Notes under the pieces: model-generated
The model's database searches: none
Told to the model about the DNA's origin: nothing
The model's input: only the letters and a program-made list of their open reading frames with translations
Part shown: positions 14,378 through 60,286 of the stretch, piece by piece
How positions within the stretch are numbered: the first letter of the stretch is position 1
Layout: every line of letters begins with the position of its first letter
Position numbers and translations under genes: made by a program
Source: Octopus sinensis
Taxonomy: Eukaryota
DNA: 64,000 nucleotides
Reading direction: 5' to 3'
NCBI RefSeq assembly: GCF_006345805.1
Contig: NC_043005.1
Span: 90,086,001-90,150,000, forward strand

Positions 14378-17300
14378 TATGGGTTTTTCTTATTCTTTCA
14401 AATTTGCTTCCATTTCTTGCCGAGTGTCTTCCCGACTCCTAGGGCAAAGAAACTCATAGTATACATTGGTAGGCCATTAAACTAAACTCACTAGTTCGTT
14501 CATTTTTTGTTTGTTTGTTGTTTTTTTTTTTGATAGAAATAAAGTTAAATTAAAATACATGGGTAGTAATAGTTCTCACATCGACAATGCTCTTCTCAAT
14601 ACGTGTGATGTACCAGTTAAGACAATCTTTTGCACTTCTTGCAGGGATGGTAAGCCAGGGATCATTCTCATATAATATTCTGTTCCCTTCTTGATCATTC
14701 CTAGTGCTCCTACGATCACTGGTATTGTAACCGCCTTGAGATGCCACATTTTCTCAATTTCAATGAGCAGGTCTTTATATTTTCTGAGCTTGTCAAATTC
14801 TTTCGCCGAGATATTATGATCAAAGGGGATGCTCATGTCGATCAATAAGCAAACTTTATTGTTTTGGTCTTTCACAACAATATCCGGTTTATTGGCTTTG
14901 ATGGTTCGGTCTGTATGTACTGGAAAGTCTCACAGAATCGTTACATTTTCTCCTTCAGTTACAGCTTCAGGGTGGTGATTATACCACTTGTCGGCAGTTT
15001 TGATATTGTAATGCCGACTTATTAGCCAGTGGAGATATTGGCCAACTCTGTCATGTCTTAATTTATACTCCACTGGTACTAAGACTTTACATCAAGAGAT
15101 TAGGTGGTCCACTGTTTCAATCATGTCGTTGCAGAATCGGCATTTTGGGTCTGCTCCATTTTTCATCACATTGACCTGGTAGTTCCGAGTTAATAGGCTT
15201 TGATCTTGAGCAGCCAGGATGACACCTTCGCTCTCTGCTTTTAGCCCTGAGCTCCGTAGCCACTGATGGGTTTGCTTCTGGTCAACATCAGCTTGTTTGC
15301 TACGGTCCACATATTTGCCATGCAGAGGTTTCTCCTCCCACCTATCAGCCAATTGCTCGTGCGCTCTTTTCGTTGCCATTATTTTCACCCTCTTTGCAAC
15401 AATAGTTGCCGTACTTCCCTCGGGTTGTTCAGTTTGGGTATCCTGCACGAGATCAATAGCAAATTTTTTGCTTTCCTTAATGATAGAATGAAGCTTCTTT
15501 CGTCTCTCGTGGTTTTCCACGAGCTTTAGCATCCATCATCATCATTGTTCGACCGTGGTCGAGACAATGGAATTTACCATGCTACGCCAGACTTCACGGT
15601 CCATCATGGCATTACGGAGGTCCTGTTGCTGTTGCTGTTGCTGTTGCATCCAGTCATTCGTTATTTCAAGATATTTGGCCAGTCCAATTGTGGTTGTTTT
15701 GTAAGCTAGTTCAAATTGGATCAGGCCTCGACCTCCTTGGGCTCTGGGAAGGTAAAGGCGATCTACGTCTGCCTTTGGGTGGTGCATCCTATTACAACTC
15801 AGCAGCTTGCGTATTTTCCTATCTATATTCTTTACTTCACTCATATTCCAGTTCAACACATTGTAGCTATAAGTAACAACTGGAACTGCTAAAGAATTTA
15901 TAGCTAACACCTTGTTACGTGCATTTAGTTCAGATTTCAGGACTGCTCGAACTCTCCTATAATATTCCTTCCTGATCTTCTCTTTCATGCTTGCATGCTG
16001 AATACCAGAGCCTTCATTTATCCCTAAATATTTGTATGTTTGTTCTTGTTCAAGCTCTCTTATGACTGTGTCAACATCTAACACGACTGAATTTGTGGTC
16101 TTCACTTTCCCTTTCTGGAAAGTGGCCTTGGCACACTTCTCAAGCCCAAACTCCATCCCGATGTCATCACTGAATTCTTTCACAGTGCGCAATAGGCCTT
16201 CAAGTTCATTATCGTCTTTACCATAAAGTTTTAAGTCATCCATATAAAATAGATGGCTTATTTTTTTATTGATAATTTTATACCCATACCCTGTTCTGTT
16301 TAATTCACTTGTAAGGGGTATTAGGGCTATGCAGAATATTAGAGGTGAAAGTGAGTCACCTTGAAAAATGCCACAGTTGATGTTTATATTCTCTGAGGCA
16401 AGTATTCCATTAGAGTGGTATAATTGGAGATTCGTATTCCACAACGACATATTATGCTTCAGGAAGCTTGAAATCACAGGGGAAATTTTGAAGATGTCCA
16501 GCAATTTCAAGATCCATGAATGCGGTATACTGTCGAAGGCCTTTTTGTAGTCAATCCATGCGGAGCTGAGATTTCTGCGCTTGTTGTGACAGTTCTCAAG
16601 GATCATACGATTAATTAGCAGTTGATCTTTGCATCCGTATGAGCCTCGGCGGCACCCTTTTTGTTCAATGGGGAAAATATCGTTCTTCTCCATGAATGCA
16701 TATGTTTTCTCCGCCAGGATAGATGCTAGGATTTTATACGTGGTAGATAAACAGGTTATAGGCCGATAGTTTTTGGGAAGTTTGGTTTCGTTATTCTTTG
16801 GGAGTAGGTAAGTAATACCACTTGCTAACCATTCAGGCGTTTTCTTTGAGTCTCTCATAATTCCATTGAGCAGCTGAACTAGCTTACCGTGTGCGCATGG
16901 GAGCGATGAGAGCCAGAAATTCGGCACCCTATCTTTACCGGGGGATTTCCAATTATGGGCCTTTGTGAGTGCTTTTCTTATGTCTGCTATTGTGATGTCT
17001 TCCCATGCTTGTTGTTGTAAATTTTGGTAAGATCCTTCTGTTTGTATAATCCAGTCTGCATTTATGTTGTACGTCTTCTCGTCACTCCAAATCCTTTTCC
17101 AAAAGTTTTGAACTTCTTCCATGGGAGGGGGGTCTTTGATGGTTACTTTCTCCTTCCCTATTTCTCTGTAGAATTTCTTGGCATTGGATGTGAACAGCTT
17201 ATTTTGCTTGTAAAACTTGTTTCTCTTCTCAAATCTTCGTATTCTTTGAGCTTTTGCTTGGACTTTTTGTTTCAGCGTTTCTTTTATTGATATCAGTTCT

Positions 17301-18378
17301 TCTCTTGGTGAGGATCCAAATTTTCTCTTCATCTTTCTTCCTGTTCTGGATCTTACATCATTTTCACATATTAGTTCATTTAATATTGATATTTCCCCTC
17401 TCATAAACTCAATCTCTTTTTCAATTTTACTTCTCCAGGTTTGATTTCTTCCCAGGTTTGGTTTTCTTTGTTTTTTCGGGGGCATACAGCTGGTTTCAAT
17501 TGCCCTAGCAGAAGCGTAAATAATTTCATTTAACTCAGTAAAATCAGGTTTTAATTCTTGTATTATTTCATTTGTTACATAGTTGCCAATTTTGATTTGT
17601 TTTTTATTTTGGTTTGTATTTGAGAGTTTATGAAGTGGTTCTCTATCATTCATACTTGTATGTCTTACAACTTCAAGCGTATTCAGGATTTTCTGCCTCA
17701 TTTCTGCCATAGACTCTCTGTGTTCTTCAGCAAATGCGAGATCTTCAGTTACTGTTGTTTTATCATTTTCCTGACTATCTTTAACAGGTTCAATAGAATT
17801 TCTTGTATCTTCAGGCCTTTGCGTGCTTTGGTCAGATGGCAGTCTTTCAATTAAGCCTCGTGGCGGGCTATTCTGTTCATCTGATTCTTCATTTCCTTTG
17901 TGTCTTATATTTGTGTCATTTTCCGTTGCGTGCTTGATCGCGCTTATTTCACTGTCTGTGAGTCTGTTATTTCTAAGGATATCCCTCCTCACATTTGCCA
18001 ATTTGTTCTCGTCCAAATAGGGTCTACTGTCTTGATTCCGTGTTCTCCATATACTGTAAGAGTTTGCGGTGTGTCTCTCTTGAGATGGCCTACCTAATGC
18101 ATAGTAATAAGTGTATATTACTTCTTTATACTCTTCTCGGGTCCATTTGTTCCGCTTACATTTTTCTTTCTGTGGTGGTTGTGGTGGTGAACTTGGAGGG
18201 CTCGAGTTGGGGAATTTCCCGTTCAAGTGACCATCCATGTCCGTATTCGGAGAAGAGTTTGTGCTAGTTGATGACTTTTCGATCTCAGGCTGGCTCTTCC
18301 CTGAGGGACGCGCTTCCAGATTGACCATAGGACAAGCGATTTGGTATACTGATTTAGTTTTCCTTTTAGTTTCCAAAG
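14378..18378 (-). mobile_element. Nearly full-length R4/Dong-like retrotransposon (family B-related): RT, CCHC, restriction-like endonuclease
   Basis: 944-aa ORF with RT motifs (SPGKD, YRPITCL, WIDYKKAFDS, GIFQGDSLSP, FYMDDLKL), then CRFC-x8-H-x4-C and KPDIVV...IDMSIP. Broken by a 110-bp insertion and two TGA codons. (TAA)n tail. Confidence 0.93.
15536..15645 (-). mobile_element. 5'-truncated RTE-like LINE 3' end inserted into the Dong-like ORF
   Basis: Encodes DLRNAMMDREVWRSMV...* followed by (TGA)n. Flanked by direct repeat GCATCCA (15529-15535 and 15646-15652). Confidence 0.8.
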
Positions 18379-19780: not shown

Positions 19781-22236
19781 CAGTAGTATATTTTTTATAT
19801 CGTGCTTTCACTTCGCTACCGAGCGCAGCTCTGTGTGCCTTGGGTATGTACTGTGATTTGTTGTGATGCTCTGATGGTTATTGTATGGAAAGTGTTCTGC
19901 GTAGGATGTGTGCAGTGCCTAGTAGTGCAATTTTCTGTATGTTATATGTGTTTGTAAGTCCTGGTGTTTTTGTTATGTATTTGTCTGAATATTTTTTATC
20001 ATGCCTAATGCACCTATTATGATAGGAATTGTTTCTGTTTTTAGATTCCACATTCTGGTTACCTCTGTTTCCAGGTCTTTGTATTTTGAAAGTTTCTCCG
20101 TTTCTTTTAGAGATACGTTGTCATCTGCCGGTATTGATACATCAATTAGAAAACATTTTTTTTCTTCATGATCTCTGACAACTATATCTGGTCTGTTGGC
20201 CTTAATTTCTCTATCTGTGTGTATAGGCATATCCCAGAGTATGGTTGCTTTCTCGTTTTCTGTGACCTTTTCTGGTGTGTACCTATACCATCTTTTTTCT
20301 GTTGTTATTCCATAATGTTGGCATAGTTTCCAGTGTATATAGGTCCCAACTCTGCCGTGTCTGTGAATATATTCCTTCTTAGCCAGGACTGGGCAGCCAG
20401 AGATAATATGATTTATTGTTTCTTGTCCATTTCCACATATTCTGCAGTTACTTGTTATATTTCTTTTCATTATATGTTTTTGGTAATTTCTGGTGGGGAG
20501 GCTTTGGTCTTGTGCTGCAATTAAAAATCCCTCTGTCTCTGCTTTGATTCCCGAGCTTCTCAACCATTGCTGGGATTTTTCTTTGTCTATTTCTTTTGCA
20601 TTTAGTTTAGTCCAGTATTTACCATGAAGGGGCTTTTCTTGCCATCGTTTTATCATGGTTCGTTGCTGTTCTATTTTTAGTTTGGATTTCATTTGTTTTA
20701 TAGCTTTTGTTGTTTCTTCATCTTCTTCTTCTTCTTCTTCATATTTGTTAGGTGGTATGATTTCTTGTTTGTATTTGTCAGCTTCCTTAAATACTGAGAA
20801 CAGTTTTTTGTTTTGCTCGTGTTTTGCTGCTATTTGTATCAGTTTTCCTTCCTTCTGAAGTAGATATTTTTGCAGTCCTATGGTGGCTATTTTATAGTAG
20901 TTTTCCAGCTGTATAAGGCCTCTACCACCTTCTATACGTTGTATATATAGCCTTTTTATGTCAGATTTTGGGTGATGCATCCTAGATCCTGTCATTATTT
21001 TTCTTGTTTTCCTATCTATTTTGGTCAGTTCATTTAGTGTCCAGTTAAGGATATTGTAGCTGTAACTTATAACTGGGACAGCTAAAGTGTTGATACCTAT
21101 TATCTTGTTTTTAGCATTGAGCTCTGTTTTCAGTATTGATCTAACTCGTCTATAATATTCTTTTTTTATTTTCTCTTTCATTTGTGTGTGTTGTGTCTTA
21201 TCTAGTTCATGGATTCCTAAGTATTTGTAAGTTTGGCTTTGGTCTAATTCTTTTATTTCATTGGTTTTATCTAGTGTGATGTTGCTACTCTTAACTAGTT
21301 TTCCTCTTTTCATGGTTACTTTGGCGCATTTCTCTAATCCAAATTTCATATCTATTTCTTTGGTAAATCCATGAACTGTCTTTAGTAGTGTTTCCAGCTG
21401 TTTGTCATTTGTAGCGTATAGTTTTAGGTCATCCATATATAAAAGGTGGCTGATCGTTTTGCCGTAACATTTATATCCACATCCAGTTCTGTTTAGCATA
21501 TCCGATAGAGGTGACAGTGCCAAGCAGAAAAGGAGCGGAGAGAGCATATCTCACTGGAATATTCCTCTTCTTATGGGGATGGCTTTGGTTTTCACAAGTC
21601 CCTCTTTTGTTTGGAGCTGTAGCACAGTTTGCCATTTATTCATAGAGTGTCCTATGTATTTTATAATTGTTGGTGCTACTTTGTTCATGGCTAGTGTTTC
21701 AAGGATCCATGTGTGGGGGATGCTATCAAACGCCTTTTTGTAGTCGATCCAGGCCATACTGAGGCCTTTCTTCTTTCTGTGGCTGTCTTCAGTTATGGCT
21801 TTATTGATCATTAGTTGATCTTTACAGCCATATTAGCCTTTGCAGCATCCTTTCTGCTCTTCTGGAAACAGGTTGTTTTCGTCCAGGTGCTTGCTCAATC
21901 TTTGCGATATTACTGCAGTAAATGCTTTGTACATTATAGGGAGACAAGTTATAGGTCTGTAGTTTTCTGGTTTTGCTGTCTCATTTGATTTGGGAATTAA
22001 GATGGTTTTCCCCTTCGTGAGCCATTCAGGCATTGTCTCTGGCTCTGCCAGTATGTTGTTATAATTTTCAGCCAGCTTTTTGTGCATTCCTGTTAGATAT
22101 TTCAACCAGAAGTTGGGGATCTTGTCATGCCCAGGTGCCTTCCAGTTGCTTAGTCTTTGCAGTGCCTGGGTGACCTCTTCAGTTGTTATGGGGGTCCAAA
22201 GTTGCTCAGATGCTGAGTTTGTTGTTTTAATACTCC

Positions 22237-27793: not shown

Positions 27794-28625
27794 CTAGCAG
27801 AATTGCCCGGCGTTGCTCGGGGCTGAATTGCTTGAAAGTACTGAATTATGATGATTATTCAGGCAAATATTGATATACGTTTACGGTGGGAGATAAGGAC
27901 TTAACGATCAAACGTGTGCCATTGCATTGTTTTGGGGGAACCGAATTTCTGATGAGCATTATAGGGGCACCAACTTTAAGTTTGAGAATGTGTGGTGTTA
28001 GTCCGGGGTGCTCAAAGGAATTGAGTACCTCTATTGGATAGTTGATGACGTCCTGTGGGTCAGGAGTTGTATTGATAGACTGATATACATAGACTTCCCC
28101 AGGAATGAGTTTTAGCATTTCATCATTAATATGGTGAACAGTTTTATTCCTCGGGACCAGTATAGCCTTTTGGCCAATCCAATCCATATTCTGATAATTA
28201 GCTTGTAGATCTTGGAACACTGCATCTCTGAGATCAGAAGGCGTCTTAACAATGGTACAAATGGAATCGATGGCAATATTACCATTTTCATCCCCTGGTA
28301 ATTTGCCTTCGCCAAGTGCAAGGAGGGTGTGAGGAAATGCTGCTGATGTGATATTACGTCGCATATGAGCACGCATATTGGTGTGAAGTTTGAGAGTTAC
28401 TTCCCTTTATTAAAAAAAATATGCATTAAAATGGAAGAAAATGATGGTAAAGTATTTGTAAAATCGTAGACTCATCGTAGACGCACGCTAATACCCAGAA
28501 GGGCTCGATATGAATCACGACTATAAGATACTCGGTTTTGGTTAAACTGCATCGCAAAATGTGGGAGTAGTTAGGAATCTAAATCGGAGTAGACAGACAC
28601 ACAACCTTTCTTTTATATATAAAGA
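27794..28625 (-). mobile_element. Non-autonomous Helitron retaining a PIF1-like helicase fragment
   Basis: A|TCTTTATATATAAAAG 5' end; CCCGAGCAACGCCGGG hairpin 8 nt before CTAG|T. ORF with AILVPRN, LKLKVGAPIMLIRN and CNGTRLIV helicase motifs. Confidence 0.92.
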
Positions 28626-39235: not shown

Positions 39236-39669
39236 TCAGTCTTTCTGTTGATTACATGTATCTGGAATGGCAGCTTCCATGGTGGACTTTAAAAGATGCT
39301 GCAAAAGCGAATGGGCTTGGAGGATTTCGGAATAATTTAATTGCCTGATTTCTCTGGAAGTGAATCTTTCTAACAAAAGCTTTAATGTTGGTAAGAGTTC
39401 TACATCTTTCTGTACAGAAATGTCTCTGAGCAGTTTAGACTGCTGTAATCTGTTATTTTTGTCTGACTGTAATGGCAGAAGGTGGCTGACATCGAAACCC
39501 TCTGTCCCTTGGCAATGTTCATCAGCAGTGAAATCATCTCGGAGAAATTTCAAAGAGTTGGATGTTTTCTCCAGTTCTTGAACCGATAAAGAAAGTTTAT
39601 GGACTTCTTGAAGCAGAGCACTGGAATGTTCCAAGACAGAGTTAACATCCTCCTCAACAGTACTGACAT
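39236..39669 (-). CDS. RIF1: RIF1 terminal coding exon (C-terminal subdomain III-like, stop codon)
   Basis: attttcacag|AT...TGA, 434 nt. Helical-looking REIRQLNYSEILQAHSLLQHLLKSTMEAA resembles the RIF1 extreme C-terminus; phase matches the previous exon. Confidence 0.85.
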
Positions 39670-39794
39670 CTGTGAAAATAAATCGTAAATGCATAACATG
39701 CAATTAGAGGTGGTTGGATAGAAAAACAACTAAAGATGGGAATCCCACTTCAACAATATTTATAATCAAATATTTTTTTTCATTTAATTTACAC

Positions 39795-40170
39795 ATTTAC
39801 TTGTTTCAGTCATTTGACTGTGGCCATGCTGGAGCACCGCCTTTAGTCAACCAAATTGACCCCGGGACTTATTCTTTGTAACCCCGGTACTTATTCTATC
39901 AGTCTTTTTTTGCCGAACCGCTAAGTGACAGGGATGTAAACACACCAGCATCGGTTGTCAAGCAATGCTAGGGAGACAAACACAGACACACAAACATATA
40001 TACGACAGGCTTCTTTCAGTTTCTGTTTACCAAATCCACTCACAAGGCATTGGTTGGCCCGAGGCTATAGCAGAAGACACTTGCCCAAGATGCCATGCAG
40101 TGGGACTGAACCCGGAACCATGTGGTTGGTAAGCAAGCTACTTACCACACAGCCACTCCTGTGCCTTTAA
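39795..40170 (-). mobile_element. tRNA-derived SINE, full length. Partial copies near 2350, 2625, 26610, 33620, 55730, 56120, 63600
   Basis: A-box-like TGGCTGTGTGG and B-box-like GGTTCAGTCC, central CTTGGGCAAGTGTCTTC, internal microsatellite and shared 3' tail, repeated across the window. Confidence 0.82.
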
Positions 40171-42058
40171 TGTTACATTTCCTCACTGAATAATTTAGTT
40201 TTAGTTCCCTTATTAAACATACCGGTTTGAAATTGTGGTACAAGGCCAACAATTTTGAGATAGGGGCTAATTGATGACACTGAGCCCTATTACACAACTG
40301 GTATTCATTTTATCAATGCTGGAAGGATGACAGGTAATATCCTGAACTCAGAGTGTGAAGTTGGAAGGAATGCTGCTTAGCATTTGGTCCAGCTTAGTAA
40401 CAATTCTGCCAGCTCGCTGCCTTATTAATCATAGAAACATCAACTTAACTATTGTTTTTTCTTACAGATGGTATCTCTTGAGCTATTTGGCCCCTGAGAG
40501 CTATGCATAATGATTTCAACAGTAAGATAAACACAATAAGGAAAAATACTAAAATACTAGCGAACATTATTCCCTGGTCAAAGAAACAAAAGGGATGACT
40601 CCAAACAACGTTAACCAACCCGTTTCTCATACGATGCGGGTTGATTACTGAAAAAGGAGCAAACAGTATTTTATCTACTCTTTAATAACAAGGGGGGGGG
40701 GCTCTATAATATCATGCATGCTGTCTGAGTATCATTGAACTAAACTTATAATAAACCAAAGCCATTGTGTTATTACATAACCATATTGGTCAATGGCCTT
40801 TTACAATTTTGTGCATTAACTTACTGCTCCTTCCATCAACACTTTGGCAAGAAATGATGAGATCATAAGACCAAAACATGATCAGATTTATCTCCCCATT
40901 GAACTTGGTGGAATCTACTATAATTTGATATGTAACCTGAAACCTCCCCTTTTACTATTCCACCTAAGTCAGTCAAAATTAACACAGTCTCTTAGAATAA
41001 TAAAAAAAAAAAAGTAGAGTTAGCCTGTTACTTCAGCCATCAACTCTGAAGATATGAAATTAGAAAATGTAAGGAAGGAAGGATAAGAAAAAAAATTGTT
41101 CATTACCAGACAATTCTTATGAACAGGAAACAAAGTGGTAACCAAAAAAGACAAAAAAAAAAAACTCATTCTATCTTCATTATTTTTGATATCAACCTGT
41201 CTGAGACTGCTCCAAGTTCCATGATACAATCATCCTGTCTTAAAGTGATCCAAATTAAAACCTTGCATCAAATTTACCGATTAATTTATGATCTAAACAC
41301 TGGTTGAATCCTTACTGAGCTGGGCGAAACGTTTAGCGATATTTCAACCATCTTTATGTTCTAAGTACAAACTCTGTTGCAGTCCACTTTCAACACCAAT
41401 TTAATATGAAAGTTCTTATATTATGTTCCATCTCACTGACTAATTAATTCTAGTTATTAAACTATATAGTACAGAACCGTACTGTCGAAAACAATATGTT
41501 TATACAGCCATGTGATCTAAAATCAAACATTTGACTGAATGATAGAGGGGGGGGGGGAATATAATAATGGAAAATGGAAGTAGGAAGATGGTGTTTATTA
41601 GTGAGAAATGTAGTGTTTATCAACAACATCCTAACCCCGCTCAAAGCAAAAGAGACTGACTACTTGGGGGAAAAATATATGTATACAGTAGTACCTCAGT
41701 TTTCAAACTCTAATCACAAATAAATTGCACTTCATATATATATACACATATATGCACATACATAGAGAGACAGAGAGAGAGATAAAATAAAGCACGATTT
41801 ACTTGTGATCAGAGGCATTCATAAATCGAGGTACAACTGTATTAAATGAATATAAGACAAGAGACAAAATACGATTTACTCGTAATCAAAGTTGTTTGAA
41901 AACTGAGGTTCTACTCTGTGTGTGTGTATGCAAATATATATATATATACATGTATAGGTGGTGGTGATGGTATAGACAGAATAGCTATGGCTGAAATGCT
42001 TTTGATCCTAAGTCTCCACCCAGAGCTGGTCTGGGTCTAAATTATTATAACAAATTAC

Positions 42059-42502
42059 CTTTCTCGTCTTCCTCTTCAAACAGATCTTCGTCTTGCTCAT
42101 CTTCACTGTGATTCGTTTCCAAGGAAACTGGTTTTATTGGAGAGCAGGAAACTTCTACGGATGCACTGAGTGAAGCATTTTCTACATTTTCATCTGTACA
42201 AACTTTAGGAGATTTCACAGGTGTACTAGAAGCTTCCGGGTTGACTATAACGGGGACTGAAGTGCTTGTAAGAGCTGGAGAAACATCTTGCTGATCACAA
42301 GGCCTTCCCTGGGCAACTTCACAGCTTGGAGGTAGTGTTAATTGGGATTCGGAATCTGGAGTTGGTGCTCTTTGGTGGACGGTGGTAGTAGTAGTGGTGG
42401 TGATGGTGGCAGAAACTTCTTTCTCTTCTTTCTCATTCTGCAATACACTAGCTTCTTCAATGTCTAACTTTATTGAAGAATGTGGTGAGTCAAGTTCTGG
42501 CA
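42059..42502 (-). CDS. RIF1: RIF1 coding exon
   Basis: ttttttaatag|TG...AAAG|gtaatt, 444 nt, phase 1-1, within ORF 42045-42569. S/T/E-rich with an acidic end. Confidence 0.85.
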
Positions 42503-42698
42503 CTATTAAAAAATTAAAATATATATATATAAAGGGAGAGTTTACGAAAAAAACAAAAGACGAAGACAAGTGGTGTACAAAACAAACAGATGTATTAGTA
42601 TAACGCTCAGGAATAGAAAAGTCTTTTACGTTTCGAGCCTACGCTCTTCTACAGAAAGAGACACAGAAAAAACAAGGAGAGAAACATGCATGTCTGTA

Positions 42699-42744
<46 letters not shown>

Positions 42745-43367
42745 CATACACACACACACATATATATATATATACAAATATATATATAAGCACACACACG
42801 AACACAAAATAAACCCTCAATTTGTGTATTATTTAGGTTCTTTGCTGGCAAGAATGCTAAGATCTCAATGAAATCAGGTCAGATTTCTAGTTGTCACTAT
42901 TCCACTTAATTTTTTTTCAAAAAGGTGTGAACATCACAATTTTCGATTCCAAAATCCCTAAAAATTAATATAGTTAATTACTTATTGAGGGATATCTGTT
43001 TACAAAATTACTTTATCACACCTATATCATGCTGGGCCCTCTCACCTTTCATTAACTACAAACATCAAATGATAATGCTGAAGGTCTGGTGACTGAACGT
43101 TTTTGGTTTTGTTTCCAGTCCTTTTTTATTTACAGCAATTTTTCAAGTTATTTTCAGTTTTTGTCGAAAGTGTCATCACATGAAGTAGAGAAAAAGTCAT
43201 TTCATTTTTCTTTAATAATCCCTGTTCACAACCCAACTAACACGTGATATCAGTCCATCAAAGACAACCCTAGCTTCTATAGTACAAATTTCCTGTTTCA
43301 AGCGATGCAAATTTAAAACTAAATCTGAAGATTAAAAAAAAAAAAAAAAAAAAAACCAACAACTTAC

Positions 43368-44198
43368 TTTCTTGCAAGAAAGATTCTTTTTCTTCATTAA
43401 TTTGTGCTGCTACAAAGGATGGGCCTCCAGTTTTCTCTCCAGCATCAGAGGATGGAGCAGAGGTCTTTACTTCTGTGCATTTCTCTTGTGGCTCAGCAGA
43501 TTGAGCTTTGGTTTTATCTTGCAGCTCAGCAGATGGCTCTGTAGTTTTATCTTGTGCCTCAGCAGATTGAGCCTTGGTTTTATCTTGTGCCTCAGCAGAT
43601 TGAGCCTTGGTTTTATCTTGTGCCTCAGCAGATTGAGCCTTGGTTTTATCTTGTGCCTCAGCAGATTGAGCCTTGGTTTTATCTTGTGCCTCAGCAGATT
43701 GAGCTTTGATTTTATCTTGCGGCTCAGCAGATTGAGCTTTCATTTTATCTTGCAGCTCAGCAGATGGCTCTGTGGTTTTATCTTGTGCCTCAGCAGATGG
43801 CTCTGTAGTTTTATCTTGTGCCTCAGCAGATGGCTCTGTAGTTTTATCTTGTGCCTCAGCAGATTGAGCTTTCATTTTATCTTGCAGCTCAGCAGATGGC
43901 TCTGTGGTTTTATCTTGTGCCTCAGCAGATGGCTCTGTAGTTTTATCTTGTGCCTCAGCAGATGGCTCTGTAGTTTTATCTTGTGCCTCAGCAGATTGAG
44001 CTTTGATTTTCTCTTGTGGCTCAGCAGATTGAGCTTTCGTTTTATCTTGCAGCTCAGCAGATGGCTCTGTGGTTTTATCTTGTGCCTCAGCAGATGGCTC
44101 TGTGGTTTTATCTTGTGCCTCAGCAGATGGCTCTGTGGTTTTATCTTCTACCTCAGCAGATTGAGCTTTGGTTTTCTCTTGTGGCTCAGTGGATGTGG
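43368..44198 (-). CDS. RIF1: RIF1 831-nt symmetric exon made largely of 11-aa tandem repeats
   Basis: tttaaatcag|CC...GAAA|gtaagt, phase 1-1, open throughout (includes ORF 43270-43875). Repeats of SAE(A/L/P)QDKT(TEP/KAQ). Confidence 0.75.
43470..44195 (-). repeat. Coding minisatellite, 33-bp unit, about 22 copies
   Basis: CTCAGCAGA at 43492 and 44152 are 660 bp (20 x 33) apart, with one further diverged unit at about 44185. Confidence 0.95.
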
Positions 44199-44303
44199 CT
44201 GATTTAAAATAAAGAAAAAAAATTCAAGTGTTAGTGCAAACCAATATACCAAAGAATCATTGATAGAACACCGAGACACAGACAAACACAAAACATTACT
44301 TAC

Positions 44304-44387
44304 TTTCAAGCAAGGAAGATTCTCTATCTACAACGGTTTGTGCAGCTGGAGTAGCTATGGTCTTCTCTTCTGCTTCAGAGGAGAGAA
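44304..44387 (-). CDS. RIF1: RIF1 84-nt symmetric exon
   Basis: tttttctttag|TT...GAAA|gtaagt, phase 1-1. Open frame VLSSEAEEKTIATPAAQTVVDRESSLLE. Confidence 0.75.
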
Positions 44388-44513
44388 CTAAAGAAAAATG
44401 AAATACAATACAGTGAGTGAGGGACACTTCAATGTGTTTACTATGAGACAATAGAAACTAAACATCACTAAAAGATATAGGCTTCACTAAATCAACACTA
44501 TTATGTTAACCAA

Positions 44514-44876
44514 TCTCTATATATATATAAAAAGCTGAAACTGTCTGTGTATGGCAGGTTTGGTAGCCTTCAACTAACACTATCTCCTCCGAGACCCTGC
44601 AGCGCAAGTTGACCAAAATTGAGAGTATGATAGAAGAAGGCTTGTTCTTCCTTCTGTAGAAGAAAAAATTCAAATCGGACCATGTTAACACCAAAAATTA
44701 TTTACATCAAAAAACGCTTTTTTTCTATGAAAATCCCTATTTTTTGGTGTATTTCAACCAGAAAAATGTTCACTTGAAGAGAATAACAAGCAACATAATG
44801 CAAAATTTTTACTTTTCAAAAATTCCAATTCTAAAGGGTCGAAACAAACCCGAACAACGTCGGGCGATACTGCCAG
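44514..44876 (+). mobile_element. Short non-autonomous Helitron in a RIF1 intron
   Basis: A|TCTCTATATATATATAAAAG start; CCCGAACAACGTCGGG hairpin then CCAG|T (one change from CTAG). Confidence 0.82.
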
Positions 44877-45009
44877 TTGAATATACATCCAAGAACACAC
44901 CAGGACTTCACTGTTACAGTGAAGTCTATTTACATTGTCTGCTGATGTTAGTAACAGTAGAAATATATTGTTGGTGTTATACTATCATTATTGTTGTTTT
45001 AATGTCCAC

Positions 45010-45198
45010 TTTGCAGGTGGCACGTAAAAAGCACCCACTACACTCGCGGAGTGGTTGGCGTTAGGAAGGGCATCCAGCTGTAGAAACTCTGCCAGATCAG
45101 ACTGGAGCCTGGTGCAGCCTCTGGCTTCCCAGACCCCGGTCGAACCGTCCAACCCGTGCTAGCGCGGAAAACGGACGTTAAACGATGATGATGATGAT
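45010..45198 (+). repeat. Short RTE 3'-UTR-derived repeat, representative copy. Others near 24900, 31080(-), 33325(-), 34465(-), 35260, 38560, 46670, 52190(-), 57620(-), 60645(-), 62860(-)
   Basis: Recurring GGAAGGGCATCCAGCTGTAGAAAC...GTCCAACCC(A/G)TGCTAGC...ACGTTAAACGATGATGA, matching the 3' end of the RTE element at 37050-38435. Confidence 0.85.
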
Positions 45199-45721
45199 TT
45201 GCCATGTTTGTGTGGATTAGATGGAATTCTTTGAAGCAGATTTTTCTAAGGCCAGATGTCCTTGACTCTAAGTTAGGTAATGTGTCACATCACAAAGCAT
45301 GTAAAAATGGAAGATTAGAAATAAAGGAGACTGTTTGATGATGATGTTTGTGTGGAAACATATCTCATCAGCATCATAATTTAACATCTATTTGTTTTTC
45401 ATGTGGAGGTTGATGCTCTTCCTGTCACCAACCCATTTTCCCAACTAAAATATTATTCTCCCTCGGCCAGACCGTTTCACAGACGGCTGGAAACGACCAC
45501 TGCTTTCAGTTTCTGTCCTCAGTTAACACATACAAGGCCCAGAGCTACGGAAGACAATTGTCTAAGGTGCCATGCAATGGGACTGAACTAGGAAACAAGC
45601 TTCTTAACTGCATGGCCATGCCTGAGTATGTACAAAATATATTTACTTATAATGAATTGTCAAGGCAAAACTTGAAGACTGCTTGTGTATTGTAGACTGT
45701 CCCTTTTGAAATGTACAAGGT

Positions 45722-45793
<72 letters not shown>

Positions 45794-45796
<3 letters not shown>

Positions 45797-46334
45797 TCAC
45801 AGCGATGTCTATAGCAAGCTAAGTTTCTCTCATCTTCTTCATACATACATACATTTGCCTTCTGTTTAAATGTTTGAACTTATACACCAACGAGCTTTGC
45901 CTTCCTTTTCTTTCTCTATGCTACCCTAAAACATCGCCATTTCCGCCATTCGTTCGTTCGTTTCTTTAAAGTACCTTCAATTCAATCTTCATCATTCGCG
46001 GTGCCTTGAAACCCAAAATCGCCATTATTACCCCCCCCAACCAAACTTCCTTCTTCCCCAAATCAGTCTTCCGGTCATTCTATTTATATGCACCTTCTCT
46101 TCCCACCCCTATCACTCTTCTCCGATTCACAGCGATGTCTATAGCAAGCTAAGTTTCTCTCATCTTCTTCATACATACATACATTTGCCTTCTGTTTAAA
46201 TGTTTGAACTTATACACCAACGAGCTTTGCCTTCCTTTTCTTTCTCTATGCTACCCTAAAACATCGCCATTTCCGCCATTCGTTCGTTCGTTTCTTTAAA
46301 GTACCTTCAATTCAATCTTCATCATTCGCGGTGC
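45794..46334. repeat. Direct duplication of about 211 bp (45794-46004 and 46124-46334)
   Basis: GATTCACAGCGATG...CATTCGCGGTGC occurs twice, offset 330 bp, identical by eye. Confidence 0.9.
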
Positions 46335-46963
46335 GCCCGCCCTTTCCGACCCCCACCACCAATACCGGTGAACATTGTTCACACCATCTACACCGGATAT
46401 GCCCTCCCCCACATGCTTTCACTGTGTATTACCCCCCCCACCAAGACAAGCAGCTAGCGCCGCAGCTCATCAACCGCCCCACCTATCTTACGTTTCCTCC
46501 TGTTTTTGAATCTGTCACTGCCTCAACCGGCTATCTCCTTCCAGTCCCCTCCCCCACTCGTGATGTCCTATGTTTTATTCCTACGAACCTGCACCAACCC
46601 TAGCTGTCATCGTTCCTCCTTACCCCAACCCTCCCCACTGGTGCTTCCCTATATTACCTGCACCCCCAAAAAGCACCATCCGAACGTGGCCGATGCCAGC
46701 GCCGCCTTGGCTGGCTTCCGTGCCGCTGGCACGTTAAAAGCTTGAACCGATCGTGACCGATGCAGGACCCCCCCTGGCACCTGTGCAGGTGGCACGTAAA
46801 AAGCACCCACTACACTCGCGGAGTGGTTGGCGTTAGGAAGGGCATCCAGCCGTAGAAACTCTGCCAGATCAGACTGGAGCCAGGAGCAGCCCCTGGCTTC
46901 CCAGACCCCGGTCAAACCGTCCAGCCCGTGCTAGCACGGAAAACAGACGTTAAACGATGATGA

Positions 46964-48611
46964 TCTTATTATAAAAGGCAGATTTTATCTGCCTCCCTTT
47001 GTAACTTATAGAAATCTACAATATAGGATTTCTTCAATTACAATTTACCTAGCATTTTTAAGAGTAGAATGCATCGGGTCATGCCAGGTCCAGTTTTTAA
47101 AATTTAAACTCCAATTAAGCAAAATTTACAGAAAACTCACATTCTGATGTGTATGTCAAATGCTTTTCTTAATGTGGTTTACACCACACGCACAGTGTGC
47201 AACGAATAAAATGAAAGTAAATAGCAACAGAGTGATTTGAGGAAGCCTAAACTGAAAGTATTTAAACCACTACTCAAAAAATAAAAAAACACAGCAAACA
47301 GAAACAAATAAATACATAACGATTTACTCCTCACACAATTTCTTCAATTAGAGTTTACCTAAGATTTTTCAAAGTACTCCATTCGGTCATGCCATAATAT
47401 ATTTCTTTCAATTTCACCCCCAATTAAGACAAAATTCGAGAAAACTCAATATTTTAACATTTCACTCCGAAAGCATTGATGTACATGTGTGCATGCGTGA
47501 GTGTGTGTGTGTGTGTGTGTTTGATGGGTTGTGCGACACAGAAAGTGTGGTGTGTAAGTGAAGTGCTTTTGTTAGTGTGTGTAAAGAGACAGACAGAATG
47601 AAAGACAGAAATAACTGAACTTTTTTTATTCACTTTTTGTAGTGAGTGACTGAGAGAGAAAAGAGAGAGAGGTTATGTATGTATGTATATATGTATGTAT
47701 GGCTTCAGTGACACACACACACAAAAACACATACCTACGTACACCTAAAGCACGCACACACACACACAAGCGGAGCGCGAACTTCAAAATTTTGGTAGTA
47801 TTAATTTGCGAGCGTACTTCTAAGCGCGCGTAATTGAAAGTTTTCACTATGATATCATCACGTGCGAAAAAATTCGAAGGGTTTTGAACAATTGAGATAC
47901 AGATGTCACGCCTGTATTGAAAGCATTGCTAAGCTGCCGTAATTGCTTAATTAAGACTTTGTTTAAATTGAAAGGGGCAAATATGTGACGAGGTTGAAAA
48001 AAAATACCCCAGAAAAAAAAATGTACTGCTGGTATTTATATAATTCACTACTATTTTGCTACAATGTCATGAAAAAGAAAAAATTTAGGTATGTAAATCG
48101 AATTCGCCACCCCCTTTTCCCCGTTCACGTTTGTAAAAAAAAATTATTATTTAAGTTTTAAAAATTATTTACTTTGTTCAAAAAATATTAATATTAATTA
48201 ATTTTCAAGAATTATTTAATTTTATTCTGTAAAATAGTAATTAATTCATTTATCTGTAAATCCGCGAGGTTGTTACTCAGGCACCTAGAATGGTAACCTT
48301 CAACTAACACTATCTCCTCCGAGACCCTGCAGCGCAAGTTGACCAAAATTGAGAGTATGGTAGAAGAAGGGTTGCTCTTCCTTCCGTAGAACATAAAATT
48401 CAAATCGGACCATGTTAACACCAAAAATTATTTACATCAAAAAGATGCTTTTTTTTCTATGAAAATCCCTATTTTTTACGATTTTTTCACTGCTGTGTCG
48501 CCACTTTTCGGTGTATTTCGACCAGAAAAATGTTCACAAAATTTTTACTTTTCAAAATTACAATTCCAGCGGGTCGAAACAAACCTGAGCAACGCCGGGC
48601 GATACTGCTAG
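46964..48611 (+). mobile_element. Composite non-autonomous Helitron in a RIF1 intron
   Basis: A|TCTTATTATAAAAGGCAG start; ends hairpin-CGATACTGCTAG|T. 5' part matches 29230-29868, 3' part matches 44560-44876. Confidence 0.68.
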
Positions 48612-49102
48612 TATATATATAAAAACAGCAAAATGTCTGTGTGTGTGCGCGCGCATGTCCTTTATATAAATCCACAATTTTTCAGTTAGAGGGCTCACAC
48701 TTTCTATGGTCATCCACAACTTTACATTTCGCAAAGCCATTAAAAAAAAAAAAATCGATAGAGTGGCTTTTTTGCGAATTTTCTATCCAAAACCCAATCA
48801 AAATGCCCGAAACTTGATACGCCAATTTGGACAGTACTTGCGTGTATGTGTGCATGCACGCGGCTGTATATGCATGCACTAGCACTATGACCCAGCATTG
48901 CCGGGTCATAGTGCTAGTAAAAGGTACTTGACATTGTCTCCTGCAGTAATTGCAGCTAGATGCTGAGAGAGTTGAAGGAGAGATTACAGCACAGCAAAGC
49001 AACACAATCGTTTTAGGCACAAACGGCAGAGGTTGCATTACAACTGACAACACCTTGTAAACAAATACACAACCTCCAAGTTTGACTAATAATGTAACCT
49101 AC

Positions 49103-49461
49103 CTTGGCCAACTGGATTTTCAAGTTCCAATGATTTCATTTCATTGCTTGGGACATTCTTGCCATCAACTGAATTGCAATTTCCTTTCGATGGATCATTC
49201 TTCAAGTCTGAGACAACAGCAGTGGAGGCAGCTGCCATTGCAGCAGCCATTATTTCACCAGCAGATGTGTTCAGGAGACTGCAAGAAGCCTTGTCCTTTT
49301 TAGTATCGAGCTGTTTCTTAAAGTTAGCCAGGATTTTCTTCACATGAGGTACTTTAGGAGATCTCACAGGTAAATTATGGATATCATATTCAGAAAGTGA
49401 AGCTAAATCACCAACAGTATGGAGCTTTCTTGCTTTAAGAAGTTGACTCAGACCACGAAAC
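49103..49461 (-). CDS. RIF1: RIF1 exon, C-terminal subdomain II core
   Basis: ttctcattag|G...CAAG|gtaggt, 359 nt. FRGLSQLLKARKLHTVGDLASLSEYDIHNLPVRSPKVPHVKKIL, like RIF1 RGLGQLIRAKNIKTIGDLSTL...LPIRSPKV. Confidence 0.95.
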
Positions 49462-52802: not shown

Positions 52803-52981
52803 CACATGGAGGAAGTAAGCTGTGGAAGAATCAGGCTGATAGGTTCTTGACATGATACAAGCTCTGCAAATACTGGTCCAGTGCTACTGAGTTGAGATTC
52901 TTGGGTGCTGCTGTAGCTACTCTGAGAACTACCAGGGCTGTTGTTGCTGCCAGAGATGCTGTTAGAGATAGAATCTCTTTT
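52803..52981 (-). CDS. RIF1: RIF1 exon, start of C-terminal subdomain II
   Basis: ttctatatag|AAA...TG|gtaagt, 179 nt. Ends PVFAELVSCQEPISLILPQLTSSMW, like RIF1 VYPxLVxCxxPxxxILPQITSxMW. Confidence 0.92.
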
Positions 52982-54375: not shown

Positions 54376-54504
54376 CTTGTAATTGGAAAGAAGACTACGG
54401 CGTGATGATCTGGAACTGCAAGGTGTGAGCCGCCTCTTTTGTGACATGGGGGATGGTAGAGTTTTCTCCTCAAATATTGGATCAGCAAACGACACTCTTC
54501 GTTG
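54376..54504 (-). CDS. RIF1: RIF1 exon with RVSF PP1-docking motif
   Basis: atgttgcag|CAA...AAG|gtttgt, 129 nt, phase 0-0. Encodes QRRVSFADPIFEEK..., matching RIF1 RRVSFADPI. Confidence 0.93.
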
Positions 54505-57907: not shown

Positions 57908-60286
57908 CTTATTTGGTGGTGATGGTGTTTCACCATTATTCTGTAGTCTCTTCTTTAGAATACCTGTTGTTGGTGAATAAACAGATGAAGGGGAACAGGT
58001 AGCAGAAGGACAACTTTCAGGAGTATCACAGAGTGAGGAGGATAAGAACTGCTTTTCAGAGGAAAAAATGTCTGTTGTAGCAGAGGTGTAATCATCACCA
58101 TCAACATTTGTGTTCCCATGATTTGGAGAAGTTTTCATCACAGACTTTGGAGTTGCACTTTTTTTGGCACCAGACATAGAGCAGTTTGAAACCTTAATAC
58201 CATAAACAAAACTATCAGAAAACTTGGATGGAAATCCTCGATTACCAGAACGTAACCGAAGAGATTTCTTTGGTGTATCAACCACTTTGGACAAAACAGG
58301 TTTATTCTCGGATTCTTGGTCTACAAAGTTCTCATTTACTTCAGAATCCACAATAGCTGCTGGCTGAAGCACTGAGCTCTCAGTTTCACAAACAGTCATT
58401 GATGGACTGGCATCACTTTGGGTCTCATTTTGTGAATCCTGCTTCAGGCCCCCACAATTATCATCATCATCTCCCTCAAACTTTTCAGATATTGCTGTTA
58501 GGCTTGAACCTTCATCAGCCATCATGATCTCTGAAGCATTAGACTTCACTGTGACTGACTGTGCACCCTCCACAACATTGTCTAGTTTTAGTTCCTCTTC
58601 CTCAGTCAAATCTGGCTCAACATCCTGTTTATCTTGTTTGATCTTTCTTTTTTCTTCTTGAACTAAATCCAACTCCTTTCTCTCTTCTAAATTTAATTCA
58701 ACTTCATCACCTAAATCTGAGTCAAAGCTGTCTCTTTTATGCTCAGGCTCAACAACATCTGATTTAACTGATTCAGCTTCCTCTTCAATCACACCTGACA
58801 CAGCATTTTTTCCCTGCTCAACAACAGTTGGCATTTCCTGGTCACAAGAGAACCTTTCCGTTTCTCCAAAAGGACAACTATTAATGGAATCACCATTGTC
58901 CACAGCAGTAATAGTTTCACAGTAGGTTTTATCTTGAGTTTCAGAAATTTTCATGCTGTCTTTCGCATTTTTCTCAACATATGTCAGTTTCTTTACATTA
59001 CTATTTTGTTTGTGTGCCGGGCTCTTGGCTTTTTCAGACACATTCAGAACTTTTCGAGCTTTGGTTTCTTTTCCAATTTTCCTTCTGGAAGTGGATTTAT
59101 TTGCAGGATTTTCTGAGTTTTGAGTCGCTTTTTTTCGTGCACGAAGAATCTTTACGCATGAGCGTGTCCTAACAGGTGAGATTCGACGATCAGTATTTTG
59201 GACAATTTTAGTAACCTTCAATGGTTTCCTTTTACGAGATCCTGTAATAGGTTTAGACACTGGTAAAACATCTGCTTTGTGAAGCTGTTTGGAAGGACTA
59301 ATAGTACCACAAGGGCGATCAGTTATTTTGTCCTTGTCACAAACAACCTGGTTATTATCATTCTGGACATTAACAGAAATATTTTTTTCCAAATTTGGTT
59401 TCTTGATTTCTGATATTCTTTCATTTGAATCTAATTTTCGTTTCTGTGATATAGCAGCCGTATTTTGATTAGGTATCACATTTTCAGAGTCAGGAATACT
59501 CTCACTTTCGCTTGGTAGAAATAATTCACTTTGGCAAACAGCCTTTCCAGAAGTCTTTTTATTTGAAATATCTTTGGAATTATTTTGCTTAGGAATTACT
59601 TCCAATTGCTCCTCCTTTGTGGCAAGTTCAACCTCACTTGCCTCTTTCAATTCAAAACCACCAGAAGAGCTAATGGCACTGTTAGAATCAGCATTCTCTG
59701 CAAGATCAAAGGACAATCGCCTGATATTGACGCTAGTGTTAACTTCTCTTGTCAAAGTTTTGACAGGTGTTTCCAAGACAGATTCACCTGTAGACTGATG
59801 GTCAGAGCACATCTTGATTGGGGACTGAGTTTCTTCAACAAATAAGTTACTTTGCACTGGTCTGTCTGAAGGCTGGCCTTGTTCGGCCAACAAACTATCA
59901 TTTGTAAGAGAGTCTTGAGCAACAATTGAGGTTACATGAGGCTCCATGAGAAGAGGAACAGAAGGAACCTTCAAAGACTGACTAGTGCAAAGCCAATTCT
60001 GTAGAGATGTTGGCTGATCTTCTGAAACATTCTTTGACGTTTTTCCAGGTTTGATACTGACTGGTTCTTTGTTTTTGGTGAGCTTGGTTTTAGCAGGGCT
60101 TGAAGATGGTTGTATTTTAGTGTATGGTTCTAATTTCACTCCAATGTTTTGGGGTTTTTCAGCACATTCAGGGACTTTTTCACAGCTAACTGCAGGGGAC
60201 AGTTCAGGGAGTTTCGTGTCTTTAGCAAATGTAACCCTCTTAGTGGACTTGCCATAGTTTTCTTGATTTGATTTATTTGTAGCAAT
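57908..60286 (-). CDS. RIF1: RIF1 giant exon (793 codons, disordered region, ends with GILK motif)
   Basis: tctgtttccag|ATT...AAG|gtaagt, 2379 nt, contains the 750-aa ORF 57887-60139. S/T/E/K-rich; ends SPSSVYSPTTGILKKRLQNNGETPSPPNK, like RIF1 SPxxSILK...SPxNK. Confidence 0.93.

Follow-up and report, generated by a model that had tools for sequence, protein, structure and literature searches.

We identified an exon of 831 nucleotides (nt), made largely of a tandemly repeated 11-codon unit, in the C-terminal part of the RIF1 gene of Octopus sinensis, within a stretch of 64,000 nt (contig NC_043005.1, positions 90,086,001 to 90,150,000 of the forward strand; hereafter the window, with positions counted from its first letter). 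This exon, E6, is probably (a probability of about 0.75) a genuine coding exon of RIF1 that was born by duplication and amplification and would act as a tolerated spacer. It would be a coding minisatellite that is specific to its lineage and lies in a disordered linker, a fairly ordinary product of protein evolution in an interesting gene. RIF1 (telomere-associated protein, or replication timing regulatory factor 1) regulates replication timing and takes part in DNA repair, and its C-terminal domain carries PP1-docking, DNA- and G-quadruplex (G4)-binding, and oligomerization activities. The expansion of coding minisatellites or tandem repeats in disordered regions is of a known general kind, an example being the repeat region of Ki-67, a PP1-binding chromatin protein. 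The exon and its parts are as follows.

43368..44198, minus strand: E6, the RIF1 repeat exon, 831 nt, 277 codons, phase 1-1
43480..44189, minus strand: 33-nt (11-codon) tandem array, 21.5 copies by Tandem Repeats Finder
43368..43479, minus strand: nonrepeat tail of E6, CTEVKTSAPSSDAGEKTGGPSFVAAQINEEKESFLQE, with the donor; 37 codons, matching the ancestral small exon
43738..44001, minus strand: 132-nt (4-unit) higher-order repeat in two copies, 132/132 identical
44002..44133, minus strand: third, older copy of the 132-nt higher-order repeat, 115/132 identical
43573..43704, minus strand: four identical 33-nt units, (TK)AQSAEAQDK, a Pro-free, helix-prone block
44199..44303, minus strand: intron between E5 and E6, 105 nt, with a branch-site match and polypyrimidine tract

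Boundaries of the repeat exon

The acceptor of E6 reads ttttttttctttattttaaatcag/CC (the slash marks the exon boundary), a canonical cag/ with a long polypyrimidine tract upstream, and a cACTAAC branch-site match lies at 44236..44230, 32 nt 5' of the acceptor. The donor, AAA/gtaagt, is the canonical GTAAGT. No stop codon occurs in E6 in the RIF1 frame, which takes one base from the preceding exon, and the junctions 44304/44198 and 43368/42502 fall at canonical splice sites without a shift of frame; the predicted E6 junction peptide is ESFLQEMPELDSPHSSIK. E5, E6, and E7 are each of phase 1-1, and the frame is kept in any combination of the three. An exact look-up of the genomic read-through open reading frame (ORF) matched no record.

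Much of this had been proposed by a sequence-only reading of the window. Its 831-nt, stop-free exon with good splice sites was exact in both coordinates and signals (43368..44198, cag/ and gtaagt), its phase symmetry holds in that skipping would keep the frame, its estimate of about 22 repeats of 11 amino acids (aa) in two unit types compares with 21 in-register units and 21.5 copies, and its assignment of the gene to RIF1 is borne out below by protein matches, motif order, and a collinear locus in Octopus bimaculoides. The position that it gave, between the subdomain-II and terminal exons, is right insofar as E6 lies downstream of CR2 and upstream of E8, but E5 and E7 also lie in that interval.

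Structure and growth of the 33-nt array

Tandem Repeats Finder reported a period of 33 with 87% matches, 0% indels, and a score of 874 at 43480..44189. The 23-nt core of the unit, searched with at most 3 mismatches, had 18 occurrences against 0 expected, all of them in E6 within the 64-kb window. Cut in register, the array gives 21 units of two types, TTEPSAE[A/L]QDK and [TIM]KAQSAE[A/P]QDK. The Pro-containing units (n = 10) comprise TTEPSAEAQDK (6 units) and TTEPSAELQDK (4 units), and the Pro-poor units (n = 11) comprise TKAQSAEAQDK (4), forms beginning IKAQ (2) or MKAQ (2), TKAQSAEPQEK (2), and TKAQSAEVEDK (1). Before the array, the head of E6 reads as a degenerate TTSTEPQEK. A scan for the unit in metagenome contigs, a collection that is not expected to include octopus DNA, returned 0 matches.

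Expansion appears to have continued recently, because two adjoining higher-order copies are identical at 132/132 positions and four units in a run are identical as well. The array is likely to be length-polymorphic within the species, as suggested by the identical adjoining copies and by the differences between species described below. The exact self-matches within it (128-150 nt) are longer than short reads resolve well, and the O. bimaculoides assembly breaks exactly inside the corresponding array, at a gap of 936 Ns. Conceivably, then, the exon is real but collapse or expansion of the array during assembly has falsified its number of units, about 21. We consider this unlikely, as the array in the window contains no Ns, has variant units in a nontrivial order and unique flanks on both sides, and is arranged as expected for a long-read assembly; such an error would in any case touch the number of units only, not the nature of the feature.

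Identity and exon structure of the gene

A gene model was assembled within the window from open stretches and canonical AG/GT sites, and its eight exons join into one continuous reading frame of 1612 aa. Besides E6, they are as follows.

57908..60286, minus strand: E1, 2379 nt, disordered-region exon with a SILK-type motif at its end (TTGILKKRL...SPPNK/gt)
54376..54504, minus strand: E2, CR1 exon with the PP1-docking RVxF motif (QRRVSFADP)
52803..52981, minus strand: E3, Ser-rich linker and start of CR2 (PVFAELVSCQEPISLILPQLTSSMW)
49103..49461, minus strand: E4, CR2 exon (FRGLSQLLKARKLHTVGDL...LPVRSPKV), matched by RIF1 proteins across Metazoa
44304..44387, minus strand: E5, 84 nt (VLSSEAEEKTIATPAAQTVVDRESSLLE), phase 1-1, tandem paralogue of E6
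42059..42502, minus strand: E7, 444 nt, acidic Ser/Thr/Pro-rich linker, phase 1-1, conserved in cuttlefish
39236..39669, minus strand: E8, terminal coding exon with a TGA stop and a C-terminal block conserved among cephalopods

Sequence comparison settles that the gene carrying E6 is RIF1. The frame presents GILK (model residue 775), RRVSF (796), and CR2 (...LPQLTSSMW/FRGLSQLLKARKLHTVGDL...LPVRSPKV) in that order, the first two being the paired SILK-type and RVxF docking motifs for PP1 (motif definition from PMC3410773), found in the C-terminal region of metazoan RIF1. The same motif order and a spacing of 21-26 residues are common to the RIF1 of Haliotis, Saccostrea, Echinops, Ambystoma, and Latimeria, with a spacing of 17 in Lymnaea, and the conserved CR2 module LPQxTSxMWxRGLxQLxxAxxxxTxGDL...LPxRSPKV is present. 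CR2 is a DNA-binding region that resembles the C-terminal domain of the alpha subunit (alpha-CTD) of bacterial RNA polymerase.

When the C-terminus without the repeat was used as the query, an exhaustive phmmer search recovered 217 proteins at E <= 1e-3, nearly all of them covering query residues ~40-250, that is, the SILK-RVSF-CR2 block. Names were looked up for 19 of these matches, and for 16 of them one or more sources give RIF1 or Rif1 N-terminal domain-containing; the named matches included O. bimaculoides, Acanthosepion pharaonis, Haliotis, Saccostrea, Patella, Lymnaea, several vertebrates, and a crayfish. A Pfam search of the in-window exons gave no significant family, and a search of PDB sequences with the CR1-CR2 block gave no match. 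Word-indexed protein searches returned 0 matches for the C-terminus without the repeat, 0 for the repeat with its junctions, and one Logan fragment for CR1, CR2, and E8; this index misses the O. bimaculoides protein XP_014790628.1, which is in the collection and 89% identical, and the lack of a match for the repeat there does not amount to absence.

The terminal exon E8 has 47% aa identity to cuttlefish and 97% nt identity to O. bimaculoides; BLASTP similarity to the RIF1 C-termini of gastropods, bivalves, crustaceans, and vertebrates was not significant. CR3, the BLM-interaction and oligomerization region, is defined in vertebrate RIF1, and BLASTP gave no support for equating it with E8. Two further motifs were seen in E1, a second RVxF-like motif, KRVTFAKD, at its start (about 60220-60245, minus strand) and RRLSF further in; both are kept in O. 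bimaculoides and could be extra candidates for PP1 docking.

The repeat exon in Octopus bimaculoides

The RIF1 protein of O. bimaculoides (XP_014790628.1, locus CM046610.1:17550420-17599481) is 89% identical to the query, and all eight window exons (8/8) are collinear on its locus at 89-98% nt identity. The product carries the Pfam domain Rif1_N (PF12231), which falls outside the window, as the window covers residues ~1043-2512 of the orthologue. Reciprocal tblastn with XP_014790628.1 covers the window from 63968 to 39239 with the same exon boundaries, placing residues 1085-1880 exactly at E1.

Both members of the E5/E6 pair are present in this species, with E5 94% identical and the intervening intron 91.5% identical. 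Behind the same E6 acceptor (locus position 42980) stands an in-frame, stop-free array with the same 33-nt period, and the RefSeq model includes both E5 and E6, the protein reading ...DRESSLHE / TTSTEAEKKATAPSAEAQEKTTELSAGAQEKTTEPSAGTQEK... / MPELDSPHSS.... Of this array, 7.9 copies are visible (91% matches, no indels) before the assembly gap, and the unit number is therefore a lower bound of at least 7.9. The unit consensus differs from the SAEAQDK type of the window: it is TTEPSAGAQEK, in which Gly replaces Glu and Glu replaces Asp. The units before the gap are all of the Pro type, with no TKAQ type visible. Such a species-specific consensus is the pattern expected from homogenization of the array within each lineage.

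The RefSeq model crosses the gap (L001:43250-44262, CM046610.1) and continues into a 41-nt mini-exon encoding DYCQANMAVQK that lies in unrelated, inverted-repeat-like sequence. The gap-bridging part of XP_014790628.1 is probably wrong and the mini-exon an artefact. The two octopuses also differ in a Thr run, (ACC/ACT)n, within E7 (42381-42410, minus strand), which reads TITTTTTTTV in the window and ATTTV in O. bimaculoides. This run is a further coding repeat of variable length in the linker, smaller than the E6 array; over the whole of E7, the species differ by 27 nt of in-frame gaps.

Cuttlefish and other RIF1 sequences

The cuttlefish Acanthosepion pharaonis has a RIF1 (CAE1259210.1, locus CAHIKZ030001301.1) that carries PF12231 and keeps the exon order E2, E3, E4, E7, E8, including the RVSF exon, the CR2 exons, and homologues of E7 and E8. 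Between E4 and E7 it has a small phase 1-1 exon, ...ATDRPVSEENPTTAEKESFLQE/gtaagt (ending ...AEKESFLQE/gtaagt), which resembles the octopus exons in phase and position but is single, 69 nt long, and unrepeated; the E4-E7 interval contained no 33-nt tandem repeat and no detectable paralogue of E5. The annotation of cuttlefish RIF1 is in error, and its models begin well within the protein. They hold an LSLSLSPLSLS... stretch (L002:35151-35424) resembling a translated (TC)n intronic microsatellite, and they omit the greater part of the CR2 exon; the genome itself has this exon intact at L002:38630-38791.

About 55 other long metazoan RIF1 sequences with a recognizable CR2 showed no tandem repeat of period 4-80 after CR2. 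The sequence-only reading knew of no such repeat in vertebrate, fly, or yeast RIF1 and had called the exon lineage-specific. The first point agrees with our comparison, in which the vertebrates, arthropods, gastropods, and bivalves examined had none after CR2. The second stands against the unrepeated 69-nt cuttlefish exon, but the repeat is not private to O. sinensis: the comparison with cephalopod and mollusc RIF1 that this reading had called for found it not widespread among the mollusc sequences examined and already contained in a RefSeq protein, XP_014790628.1. As far as the data go, the repeat appears restricted to the octopus lineage, and it is by this comparison older than the split of O. 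sinensis and O. bimaculoides. No publication that deals with RIF1 of cephalopods, or that describes a tandem repeat in RIF1, came up in the literature search.

The sequence after CR2 spans 109-217 aa in most other RIF1 proteins versus 680 in the window and 493 in O. bimaculoides, and in cephalopods the whole linker from CR2 to the C-terminus is, on these lengths, expanded beyond the repeat exon. Without E6, the part of octopus RIF1 that follows CR2 (39236-49102, minus strand) comes to ~400 aa and is strongly acidic.

Origin of E6 and its status as an exon

The E6 tail with its donor aligned to E5 with a local score of 49, compared with 17.7 +/- 2.4 for shuffled sequences, and a 25-nt pattern spanning the donor occurred only at E5 and E6. 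Against the cuttlefish 69-nt exon, the 3' end of the E6 tail scored 32 (0/500 shuffles), whereas E5 scored 18 (37/500 shuffles); the peptide EKESFLQE is identical in the E6 tail and the cuttlefish exon. Because the tail of E6 matches this exon better than E5 does, E6 would be the direct continuation of the ancestral exon. The 33-nt unit itself resembles the head of E5 (CTGAGGCACAAGATAAAACCACAG versus CTGAAGCAGAAGAGAAGACCATAG), with 19/24 matches, a score of 23, and 0/500 shuffles.

These alignments show that E6 was derived by exon duplication and then internal amplification. In the simplest history, the coleoid ancestor had one small phase 1-1 exon at this place, 69 nt long in cuttlefish, which in the octopus lineage was duplicated in tandem to give E5 and E6, 105 nt apart. 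Slippage or unequal exchange then turned a native 11-codon segment (S-A/S-E-A-x-D/E-K-T-x) of E6 into a coding minisatellite with a 33-nt unit. Its units diverged into Pro-containing acidic and Pro-free neutral types, and growth continued recently both as a 132-nt higher-order block and by single units.

An alternative is that E6 is an intronic minisatellite or pseudo-exon that splicing always, or nearly always, leaves out, and whose coding appearance comes solely from a stop-free unit. The consensus unit is indeed open in 4 of 6 frames, two of them on the opposite strand, the differences between the two octopuses are nonsynonymous, E5 alone could fill the role of the ancestral single exon with a frame-keeping E5-to-E7 junction, and the inclusion of E6 is a prediction from sequence. 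Several of these points, with others, weigh against a genuine coding exon with a spacer role. Because the unit is open in 4/6 frames, the absence of stops across the array is weak evidence for coding and the upkeep of the frame a weak sign of coding constraint, and the nonsynonymous differences in unit consensus suggest little sequence-specific constraint. Introns are 79-92% identical between the two species, nearly as conserved as exons, so that conservation of the acceptor weighs little and a comparison of exon with intron conservation has too little power as a test of constraint at this divergence. The RefSeq model, a computational prediction patched over a gap, is weak evidence of expression; inclusion in mRNA is indicated by splice signals, homology of the tail, and this model, and the function as a spacer or tuner is one that we infer.

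Support for an exon comes from the phase and splice sites, from a nonrepeat tail that is open, and from the cross-species comparison, and an unspliced minisatellite is improbable. The acceptor is strong and is accompanied by a branch site, a GTAAGT donor, and a matching phase, and the open 112-nt tail surpasses E5 as a match to a cuttlefish coding exon. There are zero indels in the 21.5 units of the window and in the 7.9 units of O. bimaculoides, in which the RefSeq model includes E6.

A 276-aa ORF on the opposite strand (43372..44202, plus strand) exists because the unit has no stop in 4/6 frames. It was rejected as a gene, being the antisense of the array, a Leu/Ser/Cys/Phe repeat without splice or homology support.

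Properties of the encoded peptide

The E6 peptide has an isoelectric point (pI) of 4.49, a net charge of -26, 35% charged residues, and a grand average of hydropathicity (GRAVY) of -1.47, with 5% hydrophobic residues and two aromatic residues; it contains no SQ/TQ, no S/T-P site, and no SPxF motif. The earlier description of E6 as an acidic spacer agrees with the overall net charge of -26 and pI of 4.5 but has to be divided between the unit types: each TTEP unit carries a net charge of -2, whereas the TKAQ units are neutral and helix-prone. The CR2 core is basic (pI 9.85, net +6), and the span from CR2 to the C-terminal block measures 605 aa with a net charge of -62 with E6, compared with 328 aa and -36 without it.

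The peptide is probably disordered, with one helix-prone, Pro-free block. An AlphaFold model from the single sequence had a mean predicted local distance difference test (pLDDT) score of 66 and a predicted template modeling (pTM) score of 0.26, with helix at pLDDT 81-89 over the Pro-free TKAQSAEAQDK block only, and in such a model this helix indicates a propensity and no more. The 11-residue period, the long helices of the AlphaFold model, and a weak match of E6 to the Pfam family Apolipoprotein A1/A4/E (PF01442; E 6.5e-5, 23.2 bits) would be in keeping with a structured module of amphipathic 11/3 helices, as in apolipoproteins, alpha-synuclein, and group-3 late embryogenesis abundant (LEA) proteins, or with a coiled coil, either forming a new surface for binding or oligomerization. 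We hold such a module to be very unlikely. The Pfam score is far under the curated cut-off of 90 bits, and there is no apolar face: TKAQ units have a helical hydrophobic moment of 0.04, TTEP units one of about 0.2, and hydrophobic residues make up 5% of the peptide. Moreover, half of the units place a Pro every 11 residues, the units of O. bimaculoides before the gap are all of the Pro type, and low-complexity input to a single-sequence model tends to be drawn as helical. On the score and the moment, the apolipoprotein- or LEA-like amphipathic helix was rejected; the hydrophobic moment being negligible, the weak match would reflect the 11-residue period rather than an amphipathic repeat.

Proposed role and comparison with known systems

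If E6 is translated, it would add ~277 highly charged, net acidic, hydrophobic-poor residues and nearly double the linker between CR2 and the C-terminus, from 328 to 605 aa. It would then most likely act as a tolerated, flexible, length-variable acidic spacer. Its role is most likely not sequence-specific, because the differences in unit consensus between species are nonsynonymous, and, as the exon is phase-symmetric, the reading frame would survive changes in copy number and in inclusion alike. At most, E6 might tune the joint working of the basic CR2 and the C-terminal block, possibly through their spacing, through electrostatic competition with DNA for CR2, or through condensate behavior.

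In vertebrates, RIF1-Long and RIF1-Short differ by a 26-aa Ser/Lys cassette, which changes how the protein binds chromatin and phase-separates (PMC12702018, PMC7671687). With this precedent in the human C-terminal domain, E6, and possibly E5, could be a regulated cassette, alternatively spliced to give long and short RIF1 isoforms as a functional analogue of the vertebrate one. The phase 1-1 of E5, E6, and E7 would permit this, E5 and E6 are tandem paralogues, and the purine fraction of E6 is 0.60, like that of many exons that depend on splicing enhancers. On the other side, the 105-nt E5-E6 intron, with 70 nt from donor to branch site, imposes no steric exclusivity; the vertebrate cassette belongs to another linker, the one that joins RVSF/CR1 to CR2, and is neither homologous nor positionally equivalent. 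We regard regulated splicing of the octopus exon as a tentative possibility; it is compatible with E6 being a coding spacer exon and adds regulation only.

The likeness between E6 and the vertebrate cassette (human Ex31/32) is at best functional. Both are frame-neutral, low-complexity inserts in a disordered linker of the C-terminal domain, and the vertebrate case shows that such inserts can alter chromatin binding, partner choice, and phase separation. Unlike octopus E6, the vertebrate cassette is 26 aa long, basic, Ser/Lys-rich, nonrepetitive, and nonhomologous, and its alternative splicing is demonstrated. We rejected the idea that E5/E6 and the human cassette share a linker, since in mammals the cassette lies upstream of CR2 and the octopus repeat follows it; in Echinops RIF1, an SPKF-containing stretch lies between RVSF (2193) and CR2 (2321). 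Coding minisatellites such as that of Ki-67 share with the octopus array in-frame head-to-tail amplification, homogenized copies, and a labile copy number; in the octopus array, units of two types that differ in charge are grouped in runs, and the Ki-67 repeat is much longer than the 11-aa unit and belongs to a different host protein.

A more ambitious proposal would be that octopuses independently evolved a splice-selectable, copy-number-variable low-complexity module in the RIF1 C-terminal domain, whose acidic and helix-prone blocks would tune DNA/G4 binding by the basic CR2, RIF1 oligomerization, or condensates, convergent with RIF1-Long/Short. We think this improbable; if true, replication-timing or repair behavior would differ among individuals or tissues by repeat length or inclusion. 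The octopus insert (277 residues, length-labile, net -26, next to the basic CR2) would offer a natural experiment on the length and charge of the RIF1 linker. It would also provide a clean, datable case of exon birth and growth, in which a 69-84-nt exon was duplicated and a 33-nt seed amplified, and a candidate coding variable-number tandem repeat (VNTR) marker for octopus population genetics. The comparison further flags a defect in the RefSeq RIF1 model of O. bimaculoides.

Other features of the window

Retroelement ORFs fill the sequence downstream of RIF1. Those at 15542-18376 and 19973-21547 (minus strand) match the reverse transcriptase family RVT_1 (E 6.5e-29 and 4.8e-11, respectively), and the latter also carries zf-RVT. 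A fragment of a Pif1-helicase 2B domain, possibly Helitron-derived, lies at 27855-28376 on the minus strand.

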